Sequence record: NC_031010.1
DNA length: 64,000 nucleotides
Reading direction: 5' to 3' (one strand)
Made by a program: the position numbers and the translations under genes. The notes below the pieces were generated by a model. It ran no database searches. It worked only from the letters and a program-made list of their open reading frames with translations, and was not told the origin of the DNA. Shown here piece by piece: positions 33,700 through 40,689 of this stretch; the first letter of the stretch is position 1; each line of letters opens with the position of its first letter.

Positions 33700-36423
33700 A
33701 TGCGCTATACGATTCACATTACCCACACGAGCATGGGTATACGTGTGGAGGTGCCTGTCCGCCAGATGGAAGTGGCGATACTGGACTGGGCACAGGCGAA
33801 TCTGCACGCCCCGAAGATGGGCAAAGACCATGGAAGGATAGTGACGGAGAAAGGGGATGGCTTTTATGTCCACATGCCAACCATCCACACCTTTATCTTT
33901 CACAAAACATTCTTGAATCGCATTCAGTCCATCCTCAATCACGTGGGTGTAGAGTATAAGGTTGACTACGAAATCCGGGAACATCATTACCCCCGCGCAG
34001 AACCGTATCGGTGTGAATTCGCCAACTACGGTTTTGAGATGGTGGTAACGGATGAGACCTCACGTTTCTTTTACCAGAACGAAGTGGTGGACACGGCCTG
34101 TTCCGACGGGCAGGAACAAACCATCTTCGCGATACAGACCGGAAGGGGGAAAGTCGCGAGGCACGATGTGCCTGTGCGTATCCCCGGCGGTTGGAAACCA
34201 CATGGCGAACTTGCCGTGGGGGATCAGGTAATTGGACGTAACGGAAAACCTACCAATGTTACTGCGGTGTTTCCGCATGAGAATTGGGAATTCTACCGCA
34301 TCACGTTTGGAGATGGCCGGAGTACGGTTGTCGGTAAGGAACACCTGTGGCAGTCATTCTACGTAAATACGACTGAACACAAACGGTGGCAGGTTCGCAG
34401 TACCGAGGAACTTAAACGACTTATTTCGAAACCTAACCCGCGTGTCTATATCCCGCTGCCAGAGCCGGAGGAGACAAGCGAAAAATCTTTCCCTGTCCCC
34501 CCTTATCTGCTGGGTGCCCTCATTGGCAACGGCTCACTAAGCGGTAGGTCTATCTTCTTCTCAACAAACGATGTTGAAACACTGGAAGCAGTGCGTGCCC
34601 AACTGCCCGTTGGTTACGAGATGAAGCATGCCGGGGCGTATGATCACTATTTGACCTGTAACAAGGAGAGAAGTCTTCATTTGGAACTTCAGGACTTGGG
34701 TCTCCTTAATACCAAAGCCAATCAGAAGTTCATCCCGGACATATATCTCGAAGGGTCTATTGCGCAGCGCTGGGAAATCCTACGCGGTCTAATGGACACC
34801 GACGGCACAGTCAACAAGGATGGTGGCCAACCTTCGTATTGCACGGTCAGCCGTGATTTGGCGTTGGGGGTGCAGGAGCTGGTTCGTTCACTGGGCGGCA
34901 TTGCAAAAATCAGTGAGAAGCAACCGACCTACACGTACAAAGGGGAACGCAGATTGGGCCAGACGGCGTATATTGTTTTCATCCGCCACAAGACCCCGTC
35001 GATGCTGTTTAACTTGCCACGCAAGAAAGTCCTGTGTCGCGACGATGGCCAGTACACTGACACTTTGAAATTGAGAGTGACTTCCATTGAATTTGAAGGC
35101 GTGAGTCACGGTTCATGCATCACAGTGGATAACGAAGACAGTCTGTATGTCCTCGGTCAGTGGATTGTCACCCACAACACCAAAACCTTCCAGAAAGTCA
35201 TGGTGAGAAAAGGTGTCAGGACAGCGTTGATACACCGAGCCTCTTACGTTGATAAGTGGAAGTTTGACTGTAGCGAAGACCCCACCGGTCTGCAAGAGCC
35301 CGCAGAAGGCGTGCACGTTTGTAAAGGAGTTGAAGGGATATACGAAGCCTACCAGATGGGCCTCAACGGGGAACTGGATGCGAAGGGGATAAAGATAATC
35401 ATCTTCTCAACCACCTCACTCATGATGTTCTTGAAAGAGTACATCAATACCGCCCACTCCAACGCCGTGTGCTTAGAGAAGTTCTACGACGTGATGGGTG
35501 TCGGGCTGGTTGGGTGTGATGAGGTGCACGAACATTTCTATCTGGTGTATCTGGCCGGGATCATGCTGAACCCGCCGGCAACCGTCGAGATGTCCGCAAC
35601 CTTAACCCCGGGTGCCAGCAAGCAGTTTATTGGTGAACGCTACTTAGAGCGCTTCCCGATGAATTGTCGTGTGTCGGTGCCGTTTATCCCGGTTGTTGAT
35701 GTGCGTGCTTTGTACTACAGCATCGAGAACAAGAAGCTTGTGACATACGGATCGAAGATGACCCCGTATAACCACAAGATGCTTGAGAAGGCGTTTGTTA
35801 AGTACAATGCACACGAGTCGTTCGCCGAGATGGTGTGGGACTTGATGGTTAAAACCTACCTCAAGAACTATGAGGTGGGTCAGAAGGCACTGGTGTTCTT
35901 TGCCACTGTTGACATGTGTGCGTTCTTTACTGAATTCTTGCAACGTAAGCTCGCGGCAACCGAGTGGGACTACTTGCAGGTGTTCAAGTATAATGCGGGG
36001 GATTCGTATGATGACTTCATCGCAGCCGATATCGGAGTGTCGACGCCGGGTAAAGCCGGTACCGCTATCGATATCCCGGGATTAATGCACGCGTACGTGA
36101 CTATCCCAATTGATGACCAGCAGCTCAACGAGCAGATTGCCGGTCGTCCACGCGCAACAACACGCTGGCCGATTGACCCGCGTGTCTGGTTCCTGCACTG
36201 CAATGATATCCCTAAACACGGGACGTACCTGAGCTCACGCAAGAAGTCGTTGGGTGAGAAAGTCAAGTCGTTCCAAATCGCATTTTCGCCCTACGTTATC
36301 AGGAGCAGCAATGCTAGTACCTCCTACTCCTTCGCTTCCCAAACCCCCGTACGCCGGATTGAACTTAGCAAGTTTTCTCCAAAACGTTCTAAGGGCGTAT
36401 CCCGGCGCAGAAGACGTCGCTAA
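33700..36423 (+). CDS. SF2 helicase (phiKZ gp75-like) containing an intein
   Basis: Walker A QTGRGK|T split by an insert, DEVH, MSAT, EQIAGRPR motif VI. Confidence 0.9.
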   Translation: MRYTIHITHTSMGIRVEVPVRQMEVAILDWAQANLHAPKMGKDHGRIVTEKGDGFYVHMPTIHTFIFHKTFLNRIQSILNHVGVEYKVDYEIREHHYPRAEPYRCEFANYGFEMVVTDETSRFFYQNEVVDTACSDGQEQTIFAIQTGRGKVARHDVPVRIPGGWKPHGELAVGDQVIGRNGKPTNVTAVFPHENWEFYRITFGDGRSTVVGKEHLWQSFYVNTTEHKRWQVRSTEELKRLISKPNPRVYIPLPEPEETSEKSFPVPPYLLGALIGNGSLSGRSIFFSTNDVETLEAVRAQLPVGYEMKHAGAYDHYLTCNKERSLHLELQDLGLLNTKANQKFIPDIYLEGSIAQRWEILRGLMDTDGTVNKDGGQPSYCTVSRDLALGVQELVRSLGGIAKISEKQPTYTYKGERRLGQTAYIVFIRHKTPSMLFNLPRKKVLCRDDGQYTDTLKLRVTSIEFEGVSHGSCITVDNEDSLYVLGQWIVTHNTKTFQKVMVRKGVRTALIHRASYVDKWKFDCSEDPTGLQEPAEGVHVCKGVEGIYEAYQMGLNGELDAKGIKIIIFSTTSLMMFLKEYINTAHSNAVCLEKFYDVMGVGLVGCDEVHEHFYLVYLAGIMLNPPATVEMSATLTPGASKQFIGERYLERFPMNCRVSVPFIPVVDVRALYYSIENKKLVTYGSKMTPYNHKMLEKAFVKYNAHESFAEMVWDLMVKTYLKNYEVGQKALVFFATVDMCAFFTEFLQRKLAATEWDYLQVFKYNAGDSYDDFIAADIGVSTPGKAGTAIDIPGLMHAYVTIPIDDQQLNEQIAGRPRATTRWPIDPRVWFLHCNDIPKHGTYLSSRKKSLGEKVKSFQIAFSPYVIRSSNASTSYSFASQTPVRRIELSKFSPKRSKGVSRRRRRR
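34153..35178 (+). mobile_element. class 3 intein with LAGLIDADG homing endonuclease (342 aa)
   Basis: Starts VARHDVPVRIPGGW after the P-loop K; block B EHLW, block F SCITVD, ends VTHN/T; motifs LLGALIGNG and LRGLMDTDG. Confidence 0.9.
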
Positions 36424-36750: not shown

Positions 36751-37353
36751 ATGTCACAGCGCAAAAAGAAACCCGCTTATAATCCACGTAAACTTGCACG
36801 TGAGCGTTTAGAGAAGCTGATGGCGAGCATCTTCTACGTTCAGGATATGTTCACCGCCGAGTCGGGTAAAATCGCAAAACGTTTGGATATGGACTTAGCC
36901 GAAATCACCGGCACCACCGAACTGGATGCGTACAAGCGTGAACAGACTGAGCGTTCGAAAGCCGCCTACATCGGCCTTATCAGTCAGGTCAGTAAAGACC
37001 TGTCAGCCGTCATCGTCGCTGCCGACAATGCTGCGGGTCAGGTTGTTGCTGACTTGAAAGTGCGTCCGTGGAAAGAGATGAAGGATGCGGCGTTTATCGC
37101 TGAATTGGCATTGGAGCACCACTCCACGGAAGCTGCAATCGCCGGTCAGAAATACACCGGTCTGATTCTGGAAATCATGCAGGACTACTTCCGCAACATC
37201 GAATTCGTCTCCCGTGAAGTCAAAGCGGGCCGTTCGGTTGAAGATGCGAAGAAGACCCTGACTGAAAACATCGCGAAAGAAGCAGAAGTTGCTACGGCAG
37301 CCGCTGCTGAAGTTGCGTCTGCTGAAAAGGAAACTGTCGATGTCGCAGAATGA
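36751..37353 (+). CDS. hypothetical helical protein (200 aa)
   Basis: AAGGA RBS, biased codon use. Confidence 0.8.
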   Translation: MSQRKKKPAYNPRKLARERLEKLMASIFYVQDMFTAESGKIAKRLDMDLAEITGTTELDAYKREQTERSKAAYIGLISQVSKDLSAVIVAADNAAGQVVADLKVRPWKEMKDAAFIAELALEHHSTEAAIAGQKYTGLILEIMQDYFRNIEFVSREVKAGRSVEDAKKTLTENIAKEAEVATAAAAEVASAEKETVDVAE

Positions 37354-39358
37354 AGGGCGTCCGGGCTCCGGTCGCGTTGCGCCGTCAGAGAGCAATGATA
37401 CTGCTCAACTGATGGCCATCATGGAAGCTAACCCGTCTCTGGGCATTACTCAGGCGCGGGTGTTGCTCGACGAACAACGTGGGATCGCTAAGCTGGAAGA
37501 GCAAGAGAACGCTCAGCCAGTAGTCGCCCCTCCTCAACCTACTGTGCGTGAAGATATCGCTCCGGCAAACATCACACACCAACACGTTCACGTGGAGCCG
37601 CCTGAACCACTGCAAGCTGCTCCGCTGGACGTGAAGCCGCAGGAACAAGCGGTGCAGCCGCTTCATCCCCCTATTCGCTCTACAGCGTTTATGGATGCGG
37701 CGGTGGCCGCCGCTGCGCCTGCTGCCCCTTCTTTTTTGCCTCCGGAAGAGCCACAGCCTGCCCCTGAGCCGTTGACTGCCCAACCGGTAGCCCAACCTGC
37801 TCAGACCGCAGAGCCACTCTTGCCAGAGCAGGAAGAAGAACGTGTGCCGGATTATCAAAAAGCGGGTAAGCCGACCATCCGTCTGGGCAAGTCACTGGCC
37901 ACCAGTGAAATCAACGCTATCGATTCTGAAGACCAAGAACTCCTGCTACTCGGCATGGGTGATCTGGTGGGGCCGATGCAATCCCTGCCGGAAATGCAAA
38001 AGCACGTGAATCAGTTCTTCTCAAGTTTGGAACGTGACCCGCGCACCAATGCGCCACTGTTCCGTTCTGAGGAAGAAGAAAGCACGTTCTCACGCCTGCA
38101 AGCGGCACTGGCAAATACCCCGCCGACTGCCCCGGGTACGCGTAGCGCCAGCTTCGACATGGCAATGGGTCGTGAAGACACGGTGTGGAACCAAGGCATT
38201 CAGCCTGACGGTCAACCGTACCGTGGTGTGGTCAGTGTGAACACCGGCGGTAAAGGTGCTATCGCTGCACTGCGCCGTAAACGTAAGTCAGGTTCGCCGT
38301 CTACGGTCTTCCTGCCTGCGTCCGGTTTCTGCATTAGCTTCCGTGCCCCACACGAACGTGACTTCTGTGACTTCGATATTCGCATGGCGCTGGAAACCGC
38401 GAAAGTGGGCATGAGTTCCTACGGGTTGCTGATGTCTGCCTCGTCCGGTATCTACGTGCGTAACATCGTTGAGTTCTGTCTGCTGTTTGTTGAAGGCTGT
38501 TCACTGGAACTCGGCGGGGATGACCTGAAGACCACCCTTATCGATCGTATCGATAAAGATGACTACTGGTTCATTATCGTCGGCATGTTGGCGGCGAAAT
38601 TCCCATCGGGTATTCCGTGGGGCTTAAGCTGCCTGAACCCGGCGTGTGACCACGTGCAGGAAGGGCGTCTGAATCTGGCCCGTGCGATTCGCATGGGAAC
38701 CAGCTTACTGGCTGATGAGCAGCGCCAGCTGTATTACCGTCAGCGCAGTGAAGATGCCTCTGAAAACACCATCACGTACGAAGAGCAAACGCAGTACCGC
38801 CAGCAGCACAAGTCGGTGGCCGCGTCTATCTTTGAGAAAGACGGTGTGACGATTGAGTTCGGTCGTTCTTCGCTGGGTGACTTCTTTGATGTTACCGAAG
38901 AGTGGGCGGATGAAATCAACGAAACCACTACGCGGGCGTTGACTGACTATGCCACCGAAAAAGACCGTGAGACCCATCTGCGTGTGAACGCGGAGTCTCG
39001 TCGTCTGACGCGTTACCTGCACATGGTGAAATCCATTTCGATTGATGAAGGCGAAGGTCGGGTGTCGAAAGCCACCAACCGGGCTGAAATCAAAACCATG
39101 CTGGCAGAGATGTCGTCTGACCGTCTGTACGTGACCGAGTTCGAAGCGGCGGTAACGAAGTTCACCGAGATGTCTCGCTTGGCGGTGTTTGGCTACATGG
39201 GCAAGAAGTGTCCACAGTGCCAGCATTCGCAGGGTGAGGCCGACGGTGACTTCCGCGGTATCGTGACCATCTCACCGGACAGGGTTTTTTTCGCGCTATC
39301 TCGTGCGGTGTCCGCAATGCAGAGGCTTTGGCTCAGTCAATACGCCGATATTGGCTAG
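37340..39358 (+). CDS. tail/baseplate assembly chaperone-like protein (T4 gp26-like domain) with Pro/Gln-rich N-terminus
   Basis: D..D..F.I..M.A...G.....C..PAC...L.L pattern and terminal CPQC...FF. Confidence 0.6.
   Translation: MSQNEGRPGSGRVAPSESNDTAQLMAIMEANPSLGITQARVLLDEQRGIAKLEEQENAQPVVAPPQPTVREDIAPANITHQHVHVEPPEPLQAAPLDVKPQEQAVQPLHPPIRSTAFMDAAVAAAAPAAPSFLPPEEPQPAPEPLTAQPVAQPAQTAEPLLPEQEEERVPDYQKAGKPTIRLGKSLATSEINAIDSEDQELLLLGMGDLVGPMQSLPEMQKHVNQFFSSLERDPRTNAPLFRSEEEESTFSRLQAALANTPPTAPGTRSASFDMAMGREDTVWNQGIQPDGQPYRGVVSVNTGGKGAIAALRRKRKSGSPSTVFLPASGFCISFRAPHERDFCDFDIRMALETAKVGMSSYGLLMSASSGIYVRNIVEFCLLFVEGCSLELGGDDLKTTLIDRIDKDDYWFIIVGMLAAKFPSGIPWGLSCLNPACDHVQEGRLNLARAIRMGTSLLADEQRQLYYRQRSEDASENTITYEEQTQYRQQHKSVAASIFEKDGVTIEFGRSSLGDFFDVTEEWADEINETTTRALTDYATEKDRETHLRVNAESRRLTRYLHMVKSISIDEGEGRVSKATNRAEIKTMLAEMSSDRLYVTEFEAAVTKFTEMSRLAVFGYMGKKCPQCQHSQGEADGDFRGIVTISPDRVFFALSRAVSAMQRLWLSQYADIG
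39286..39292 (+). promoter_or_regulatory. -1 frameshift slippery heptamer T TTT TTC
   Basis: In frame with the upstream ORF; the -1 frame is open into the 39328-39771 ORF. Confidence 0.65.
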
Positions 39359-39771
39359 ACAGCGAGCACGTTTCAACCGAGACCATCATCACGACCTTAA
39401 AGCTTGATGCCACGTCACTCTTTAAAAGTCGTAAAGGCAAACCCATCACGTATCAGGAAGCACACGACACGTTGTTGGGGGCGTTCGACGATGCCATTGA
39501 ACACGACACCGGGCCAAACTCGGTGTTCTTCTCTGACTTCGACGACCCGCTGACCGGTTCTCTGTTGGACATCTGGTTGGACACGTACATCCGTGAGCGA
39601 ATCGGTGAGCGGTTCAACCTGTCGTTTGATGAATTCCTTGACCGACCCCGTTATGAAATCATGCGCATGATAAGTGTCGTTGGGCGTTATAACGCGGTGG
39701 TCAATCGGGAAATCAACAAAGCAGGGAAAGATGTTGACTCGTTGGAACAACAGTTGCACGGGAAAACGTAG
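39328..39771 (+). CDS. gp51/gpT-like extension, probably expressed by -1 frameshift
   Basis: TTG start only, no clear RBS; FNLSFDEFLDRPRYEI pattern like tail-chaperone extensions. Confidence 0.6.
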   Translation: MAQSIRRYWLDSEHVSTETIITTLKLDATSLFKSRKGKPITYQEAHDTLLGAFDDAIEHDTGPNSVFFSDFDDPLTGSLLDIWLDTYIRERIGERFNLSFDEFLDRPRYEIMRMISVVGRYNAVVNREINKAGKDVDSLEQQLHGKT

Positions 39772-39777
39772 CATCGT

Positions 39778-39804
39778 GGGGGCTTCGGCCCCCTTTCTTT
39801 TTTT
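39778..39804 (+). terminator. intrinsic terminator
   Basis: GGGGC-TTCG-GCCCC plus T-run. Confidence 0.8.
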
Positions 39805-39843: not shown

Positions 39844-40689
39844 ATGAATATCTACGACGATGTCGCTGACCAGCTCATTGCCCATCGGCATGAGACCCGT
39901 GCTGCGGCAATGTTAGACCTGACCACTATCTTGATTGACAACGGCTATGAGCCGGCGTTGACTGAGATTTACCATCAGCCGATTCCTGACCCGAACGAAG
40001 AGACGGTACGTTACGAAGAGATTATCATTCGCTGTGCTAAAAACTTTGGGTCGAAATGCGGCATCGCGTTTAACCCACAGGTAGCATGGCACAAACCCAA
40101 AGAGACGGGGTTGATTCTCCATGGTCTCTTAGAAGGCTTTGAGGCCAACGAAGATGTGGACACCCTCTACGGTATCGTGCTCTCGGGTGAGCCGCCTATC
40201 TTTGTACTGGAAAACCTGATTCGCTACGTCTTCGGTGATGACAACCTGCATGTTGAGGATTTAATCATCAACGTCGAGAACCGGGTGATGACGGTACTTC
40301 AAAACTTCCTCTCTGCGGCGACCATTGAGAAGAACAATCTCAACACCAACGATCGCATGGCACACATTGCGGCCTACCTGCGATACTACCCGCAGAACCC
40401 CAGTGCATGGGTCTTTATGAACCTGCCACCGGAAGTCGAGGAGAAAGTCCTTATTCAGCAGCTTGACTTCGGGGAAGACAACGGGGTAAGTGCCCTAGAA
40501 TTACTGGCCATCTACAGCGTGGGCTTGTGTGTTGCCCAGTGTGATGATTTTGACAGCGCTTACACGCAGCTGGAGAAGTCTTTTGAAGCATTGAATACAG
40601 ATGGGTACCCTGCGACCCCAACGCTTCAGGAAGGCTTACAGGCGCTTAAAACCATATACGGGGTAACAGTGGAACATGAACAAGCTTGA
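39844..40689 (+). CDS. conserved protein, probably virion-associated (281 aa)
   Basis: AAGGA RBS; overlaps the vRNAP gene. Confidence 0.7.
   Translation: MNIYDDVADQLIAHRHETRAAAMLDLTTILIDNGYEPALTEIYHQPIPDPNEETVRYEEIIIRCAKNFGSKCGIAFNPQVAWHKPKETGLILHGLLEGFEANEDVDTLYGIVLSGEPPIFVLENLIRYVFGDDNLHVEDLIINVENRVMTVLQNFLSAATIEKNNLNTNDRMAHIAAYLRYYPQNPSAWVFMNLPPEVEEKVLIQQLDFGEDNGVSALELLAIYSVGLCVAQCDDFDSAYTQLEKSFEALNTDGYPATPTLQEGLQALKTIYGVTVEHEQA

Follow-up and report, generated by a model that had tools for sequence, protein, structure and literature searches.

A conserved T run in phiKZ-like jumbo phages as a probable -1 frameshift site between a gp77-family gene and a downstream open reading frame

In the genome of Erwinia phage vB_EamM_Kwan (NC_031010.1 / KX397369), a phiKZ-like jumbo phage of the genus Wellingtonvirus, a long open reading frame (ORF1) is overlapped near its 3' end, around a run of T's, by a second one in the -1 frame (ORF2), and the question this locus raises is whether these are two genes or one gene read in two frames. 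The window analyzed is the stretch of 64,000 nucleotides (nt) formed by bases 1-64000 of the record, in the record's own coordinates, and all features given here lie on the plus strand. GenBank splits the whole unit (37340-39771) into gp51 and gp52. ORF1 (37340-39358, with the ATG at 37340 and the stop codon at 39356-39358) is Kwan gp51, labeled 'hypothetical protein', and its 0-frame product of 672 amino acids (aa) belongs to the phiKZ gp77 family (PHROG 8054/4585). ORF2 (39250-39771, stop codon at 39769-39771, PHROG 7580/12109) is open from 39250 and continues for 159 codons past the T run, of which GenBank gp52 covers only 39472-39771, counted from a TTG at 39472. We consider it probable, at roughly 0.68, that ORF1 and ORF2 form one recoded gene, expressed through a -1 ribosomal frameshift at the T run.

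The stretch open in both frames (39250-39358) holds the slippery run T7-C, followed by 64 nt that are read in both frames. The context of the run in Kwan is AGGG-T7-C and the codons of the 0 frame are GTT TTT TTC, so that T_TTT_TTC is an X_XXY_YYZ heptamer in the correct phase. Joining 651 residues of ORF1 to 159 of ORF2 gives a fusion product of 810 aa. An earlier interpretation of this DNA made from its letters alone (the sequence-only reading) had described this heptamer, a hairpin at 39304-39316, the 672-aa ORF1 and a -1 frame open to 39771, with products of 672 and about 810 aa, and we found all of these positions and sizes to be right. It had also stated that the -1 frame contains no ATG, which is nearly so: the first in-frame ATG is situated 36 codons before the stop codon, and the frame also contains TTG codons, one 37 nt past the run and another at 39472. 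The bare motif TTTTTTTC is present in 6 copies in the window against 2.7 expected, and 6 copies were reached in 4 of 100 shuffles. The weight of evidence therefore rests on comparison with relatives: the motif alone is not beyond chance, and the conservation of the run together with the frame arrangement is far beyond it.

For this comparison tblastn was run with ORF1 and, separately, with the -1-frame piece as queries. ORF2 was matched by 65 records; in all 64 that were checked the match starts at residue 1 of the query, which is the first codon past the run, and the ORF1 match ends 64 nt past that start, giving an identical 64-nt overlap. From the Kwan clade, 31 loci with 24 distinct sequences were compared (Kwan, Wellington, pEa_SNUABM_11, SPN3US, SPAsTU, Asesino, phiEaH2, Machina, Huxley, Caitlin, ChrisDB, CR5, EarlPhillipIV, Derbicus, Phobos, and Logan, JGI and IMG/VR metagenome contigs). 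All 31 loci carry an unchanged T7-C, at ORF1 identities down to about 40% and with variation at nearby synonymous sites, the 0-frame stop codon always lies 65 nt past the run, and the -1 frame is always open for 151-163 codons further. Distant relatives are arranged alike, namely phiKZ, 201phi2-1, Ea35-70, RSF1, seven distinct metagenomic lineages, Bacillus phage AgentSmith, Klebsiella phage N1M2, Aeromonas phages PS2 and D3 and Halocynthia phage JM-2012. Each of them has T6-T8 on Phe-Phe codons, a -1 frame that stays open through the run and 148-171 codons beyond it, and a 0-frame stop codon 8-22 codons past the run; in phiKZ, 201phi2-1, Ea35-70 and RSF1 the run is T7 or T8 and the annotated small gene lies in the -1 frame, open from before the run. 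Small genes that are annotated separately past the gp77 homologue in distant relatives are homologous to ORF2 (hhalign 96.5%, E 9e-10). The +1 frame was checked in AgentSmith, N1M2, PS2, D3 and JM-2012, and in these five phages it shuts after 1-5 codons. The same five (L051-L055) are jumbo phages outside the classified phiKZ-like genera, one of them with a Gram-positive host. A scan of IMG/VR added 12 more distant loci, all with a run and frames of the Kwan type. In total the arrangement is shown, without exception, by about 40 distinct sequences, which come from unclassified phages, metagenome lineages and at least 12 named genera; the set includes SPN3US, Asesino, Machina, CR5, phiKZ, 201phi2-1, Ea35-70, RSF1, Klebsiella N1M2, Aeromonas PS2 and D3 and the unclassified Bacillus phage AgentSmith. 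The sequence-only reading had proposed the fusion of ORF1 to an ORF lacking a start for a single phage. Conservation of the T run and of the frames was found in every relative examined, as was the two-frame unit itself, which gives that proposal strong comparative support, far wider than one phage.

The heptamer is in the correct phase, as T_TTT_TTC, T_TTT_TTT or T_TTT_TTA (the last in AgentSmith), in 19 of 20 lineages; the run has only six T's in five lineages and is T7 or T8 in the others. In most of these genes the other Phe codons are preferentially TTC, with TTC to TTT ratios of 18:6 in Kwan, 14:2 in RSF1 and 20:2 in Aeromonas D3. The naive chance product for a preceding codon that ends in T and a first Phe codon that is TTT is about 1e-20, a value that overstates independence because the lineages are related. 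The direction of this calculation we judge to be decisive: the run is kept at the nucleotide level beyond the need of the protein and contrary to the local preference among Phe codons.

The second line of evidence comes from the way in which ORF2 begins. No conserved start codon was found in the -1 frame across the relatives examined. In the Kwan clade the first ATG, GTG or TTG is 37-184 nt past the run, and elsewhere the distance reaches 300 nt; because this codon varies in position and type between genomes, the lengths of ORF2 given by gene callers vary as well, from 89 to 136 aa. In Wellington, a phage 99.7% identical to Kwan, the gp52 counterpart is annotated as a 147-aa gene started from TTG, and the annotated starts of the small gene in phiKZ, 201phi2-1, Ea35-70 and RSF1 are TTG, CTG, GTG, or ATG 219 nt downstream of the ORF1 stop codon. 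Ten distinct sequences of the Kwan clade have no ATG, GTG or TTG for at least the first 51 codons (none before +154). The entropy over this stretch in those ten is 0.62, 0.34 and 1.23 bits at -1-frame codon positions 1, 2 and 3, respectively, a pattern that we take as the signature of a translated frame. L042 and L043, compared over 61 codons without a start, differ at 9, 9 and 28 sites by codon position. The periodicity follows the 0 frame upstream of the run (1.04 at the third position) and the -1 frame downstream of the ORF1 stop codon (1.36), and within the 64-nt overlap variability is damped at all three codon positions. Both frames are under purifying selection. The first codon of ORF2 is CGC, CGG, CGT or CGA, all of which encode Arg in the -1 frame, and the base that varies changes the 0-frame residue between Ala, Gly, Val and Glu. 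Conservation of ORF2 begins with this codon, and most of its invariant residues are in several genomes upstream of any possible start.

These observations bear on an explanation without recoding, according to which ORF2 is a separate gene, translated from variable non-ATG starts or by reinitiation past the ORF1 stop codon, and the T run is kept for the sake of a structural Phe-Phe pair. The pair is indeed conserved. Together with a Leu two residues further on it is invariant in 10 of 10 aligned sequences, and as F650 and F651 it is nearly invariant in an alignment of 82 family members, within a confidently modeled helix. In addition, all GenBank records examined except that of phage SEGD1 give the pair as two hypothetical genes with arbitrary starts, and in RSF1-like phages and 201phi2-1 start codons occur at or near the ORF1 stop codon. 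A Phe-Phe pair, however, can be encoded without TTT and without a T at the end of the codon before it, and local usage favors TTC. The ten sequences just described lack a start precisely where coding periodicity and most of the invariant ORF2 residues are found. Moreover, in CR5, L045 and JM-2012 only 3-17 nt of open -1 frame precede the run, and in CR5 these contain neither a start nor a near-cognate codon. Two particular starts were also considered. The TTG 37 nt past the run is preceded by GAGG at only 2 nt and is missing from most relatives, and an independent start was rejected as a general mechanism; the GenBank start at TTG 39472 was rejected as well, as it would lose the 60 most conserved residues. 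On balance we hold a separate ORF2 to be very improbable.

The 0-frame product, for its part, is a complete gp77-like protein. ORF1 matches PHROG 8054 with an E-value of 2e-272 and PHIKZ077 by tblastn, and the family comprises 970 cluster representatives at E <= 1e-3, including phiKZ gp77, 201phi2-1 gp136, Ea35-70 gp263 and RSF1 ORF196. The 0-frame tail past Phe-Phe aligns with the natural C-termini of these four proteins. Among the 150 best of the 970 representatives we found no in-frame extension of the size of ORF2; nearly all of them end no more than about 15 residues past the end of the match, and a few within 46.

This absence of in-frame fusions, together with the purifying selection on both frames, also argues against the supposition that the two frames are an artefact, that is, a homopolymer sequencing error or a recent inactivating mutation in what is truly one continuous ORF, or a dead one. 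Homopolymers are error-prone, and one record, SEGD1 (Enterobacteria phage, KU726251.1, L007, locus 596-2983), has ORF1 and ORF2 annotated as a single coding sequence (CDS) of 795 aa. Over this span 16 mismatches and 2 indel events (net 1 nt) separate SEGD1 from SPN3US, a phage of its own species; they cluster near the run, and the run does not differ. These differences look like local sequence error, which is probably the origin of the fused CDS, a natural in-frame fusion being the other option. More than 60 genomes and metagenome contigs, sequenced independently of one another, show the two-frame arrangement, which rules out a sequencing error in general, and we give such an error next to no probability.

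If the pair is expressed by frameshifting, most ribosomes would read through the run in the 0 frame and stop 21 codons past it, which would give the complete 672-aa protein as the major product. In a minority, tRNA-Phe would slip back by one base on U_UUU_UUC and translation would proceed in the -1 frame to a minor product of about 810 aa, with the 159-residue ORF2 domain in place of the last ORF1 helix. Having no start of its own, ORF2 would therefore be made only as an extension of ORF1. The intrinsic slipperiness of the run, and not a dedicated RNA structure, would determine the proportion of the two products, as in the G/GT pair of phage lambda. What the sequences show directly is the anatomy of the site, its conservation, the coding signature of the -1 frame and the completeness of the 0-frame protein; a programmed shift on the ribosome, its efficiency and any function are what we infer.

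Hairpins or pseudoknots that begin 5-9 nt past a slippery heptamer often stimulate such shifts, though they are not obligatory. RNA structure was examined by folding segments of 44, 69 and 99 nt past the run in 16 Kwan-clade sequences and of 60 nt in 17 lineages, a procedure that covers structures other than pseudoknots. The alifold consensus energy past the run is about -1 kcal/mol. A small hairpin of 5 base pairs (bp) with a 3-nt loop is indeed present in Kwan at 39304-39316, where the sequence-only reading had placed it. It is kept in the Kwan subclade only, without covariation and with a stability no higher than that of shuffled sequence, and sequences of the SPN3US, Machina and CR5 types can form other stems of 5-6 bp at that place. 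With z-scores around 0, no consensus structure and weak pairings that differ between clades, we rejected it as a stimulator of the shift. A Shine-Dalgarno-like stimulator upstream of the run was likewise rejected: AGGG is not conserved, and AGAC, CGGG, CGAC or CGCG are found elsewhere. Nucleotide conservation is strong over the first about 35 nt past the run, and this is better explained by double coding than by RNA structure.

Several points weigh against a ribosomal frameshift, besides the relatedness of the lineages mentioned above. No conserved or unusually stable structure was found downstream of the run, where minimum free energy z-scores are about 0 (mean of -0.15 over 17 lineages), and Rfam gave no match at the site, for which reasons the efficiency of the shift may be low. 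Lambda G/GT works without strong stimulatory RNA structure, and the lack of structure at the present site would likewise suit a low, fixed shift rate. Two related contigs (L046 and L049) have only G_TTT_TTT. The RSF1-like subclade has ATG or GTG right past the ORF1 stop codon and in 201phi2-1 a TTG overlaps it, so that in these phages ORF2 may be initiated independently or in a coupled manner, possibly alongside a frameshift. The trans-frame protein is a predicted product, and we found no paper or annotation that mentions it. Finally, the T run also permits slippage of RNA polymerase, which is inseparable from ribosomal slippage by sequence alone.

In this last case the phage or host RNA polymerase would add one U on the T run in some mRNAs, and the resulting fusion protein would be the same. 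The signal is a pure homopolymer of 6-8 T's, the lack of a conserved stimulatory structure downstream fits such a mechanism, and these phages transcribe with their own unusual multisubunit RNA polymerases. On the other hand, appreciable slippage by bacterial polymerases is mainly seen on runs of at least about 8-9 nt, and the five lineages with only six T's have the exact minimum for T_TTT_TTC, which makes polymerase stuttering less likely. The run is also always in the phase of the canonical heptamer, though the Phe-Phe codons would force that phase anyway. We therefore regard transcriptional slippage as unlikely and ribosomal frameshifting as the preferred explanation.

The AlphaFold2 model of ORF1, built on 82 sequences, has a mean predicted local distance difference test (pLDDT) value of 82 and is confident over about residues 181-672, with the tail forming a helix at 646-667. 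This structured core (37880-39355), with pLDDT mostly above 90, contains F650 and F651 as well as C431, C436, C624 and C627. These four Cys residues form two pairs about 190 residues apart, and because they are nearly invariant over the 82 family members, they suggest a structural zinc site in ORF1. The core is preceded by a low-complexity linker rich in Pro, Ala and Gln (about residues 57-180, 37508-37879), which is lineage-specific and predicted to be disordered; its pLDDT is below 50 over most of 69-175, and it is missing or unalignable in phiKZ-type homologues. The structure of ORF2 was predicted with low confidence (pLDDT 48), and a Pfam search with ORF2 gave no match. A comparison of the ORF2 profile (39292-39768) with PDB profiles gave a marginal match to the small subunit of eukaryotic DNA primase over residues 13-79 (E about 0.17-0.2), which is not significant and probably due to chance.

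The sequence-only reading had called ORF1 chaperone-like, a description for which the sequence gives no basis. ORF1 had no significant match among Pfam and PDB sequence profiles, and a Foldseek search of its model against PDB returned only spurious proteasome or actin matches (E 0.14 or worse). The only links are weak Foldseek and PHROG similarities to baseplate-hub or hub-assembly proteins of the T4 type. Against BFVD, whose entries are predicted structures with automatic names, Foldseek found chimallivirus orthologues first and then many proteins of about 250 aa (E 7e-5 to 2e-2, probability 0.9-1.0) named baseplate hub assembly protein (T4-like), baseplate hub subunit or hub assembly chaperone, with a target-normalized template modeling score of about 0.5. 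Two of the 82 family members matched PHROG 150 'baseplate hub' with E 1.6e-5 and one more, P0135, with E 0.009, and the Kwan protein itself did not match it. In two GenBank records an orthologue is named 'putative baseplate hub assembly protein'. An hhalign comparison of the family profile with one T4-like hub subunit, from phage DLP6, and with the neighboring ORF gave no match, and the split 'hub assembly catalyst' annotated in DLP6 starts from an ordinary ATG and lacks a slippery run. Involvement in baseplate-hub or tail assembly is a weak lead. Because the Kwan protein does not match these hub profiles, hhalign was negative and the neighborhood is one of replication and transcription, we keep 'assembly chaperone' as a lead and not as a finding.

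The gene pair in Kwan is surrounded by helicase, RNA-polymerase-subunit and DNA-polymerase genes, and the context is equal in relatives; no hub, spike, tail-tube or tape-measure genes were found nearby in the annotated context. By position, the flanking gp50 (36751-37353) is the counterpart of phiKZ gp78 and gp53 (39844-40689) that of phiKZ gp79, both without a match in a Pfam search, and their order beside the gp77-like gene and the gene of a virion RNA polymerase subunit (phiKZ gp80) is kept in most phages examined. Directly 3' of ORF2 there is a strong intrinsic terminator (39778-39803) with 6 GC pairs in the hairpin, a GNRA-like loop and a T tract, and similar sequences of a hairpin plus T tract follow ORF2 in SPN3US, Asesino, CR5 and pEa_SNUABM_11. 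Its position directly past ORF2 implies one 3' end common to ORF1 and ORF2, and no promoter-like site was found between them in Kwan. The nearby DNA helicase gp48 (33700-36423) is a protein of 907 aa with a LAGLIDADG_3 homing-endonuclease domain at residues 359-409 (E 1e-11). In the near-identical Wellington the helicase has 565 aa, and the coordinate offset of 1027 nt between the two genomes fits the 342 extra codons of Kwan. The long form is present in the metagenome relatives L013 and L015 and the short one in L012 and L016, and the extra segment looks like an intein or a homing-endonuclease insertion that is polymorphic within one species.

We found no report of this frameshift in the literature, in a search that mostly covered the main text of open papers, nor any function for phiKZ gp77, SPN3US gp39 or SPN3US gp40. 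The mechanism is of a known kind; new are the gene family and the breadth of its distribution, and this among phiKZ-like nucleus-forming phages, which are among the most intensively studied phages today. If the frameshift is real, the gene models of every record examined, and probably of hundreds more relatives, need correction, and a protein of about 700-810 aa is absent from the proteome lists of these phages. ORF2 homologues such as PHIKZ076.4, 201phi2-1 gp135 and SPN3US gp40 would then have to be treated as a domain of gp77 and not separate small proteins in knock-down, interaction and localization screens. The run would also be among the most deeply conserved phage recoding sites known outside tail-chaperone genes, and a core gene without a described function would gain a testable lead, in hub or tail assembly.

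Among known systems, the closest counterparts are the direct orthologues, phiKZ gp77, 201phi2-1 gp136 and SPN3US gp39 with PHIKZ076.4, gp135 and gp40, respectively, which share the same run, frames and ORF2 homology, and for none of which we found a described function. The phiKZ-type orthologues differ in that they lack the disordered N-terminal extension, which is specific to phages of the Kwan and SPN3US types, and in that their run is T_TTT_TTT rather than T_TTT_TTC. The dnaX gene of E. coli (tau/gamma) and the orfA-orfB pairs of insertion sequences are similar in having a homopolymer-type heptamer used in bacterial translation to obtain two products of fixed ratio from one gene. In dnaX the shifted frame stops at once and gives the shorter of the two products, and the shift makes use of a Shine-Dalgarno-like element before the site and a hairpin after it; no such element or hairpin is conserved at the gp77-family site.

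T4 gp26 and gp51 are baseplate-hub assembly chaperones (Leiman et al. 2010, PMC3004832, Table 2). The likeness of gp77-family members to them consists of the weak BFVD fold and PHROG 150 similarities, from which the Kwan protein departs by having no PHROG 150 or Pfam match and no hub or spike genes close by. T4 gp26 and gp51 are not known to be made by frameshifting.

The conserved frameshift of the tail assembly chaperones of long-tailed phages, lambda G/GT included, is reportedly the subject of work by Xu, Hendrix and Duda in 2004. The sequence-only reading had invoked the logic of this pair, and as far as the frame arrangement is concerned the comparison is sound. In both systems the upstream ORF would have a heptamer close to its 3' end at which the -1 shift takes place, the major product would be the short one of the 0 frame, and the longer product would carry a downstream domain of about 150 aa without a start of its own; in both it is the arrangement rather than the sequence that is kept across very divergent phages, and strong RNA structure is absent. 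The comparison fails in location, size and chaperone-family similarity: the Kwan pair is not situated between tail-tube and tape-measure genes, members of the ORF1 family have 500-700 aa and a probable zinc site compared with about 100-150 aa, and neither ORF1 nor ORF2 has a Pfam or profile match to any tail-chaperone family. It is a doubtful idea that the gp77-family protein and its frameshift extension are the phiKZ-like counterpart of the G/GT pair, on a hub-assembly scaffold similar to T4 gp26/gp51. If so, jumbo myoviruses, which were thought to be without the 'universal' tail-chaperone frameshift, would have it as well, in disguised form and at a distance from their tail genes.

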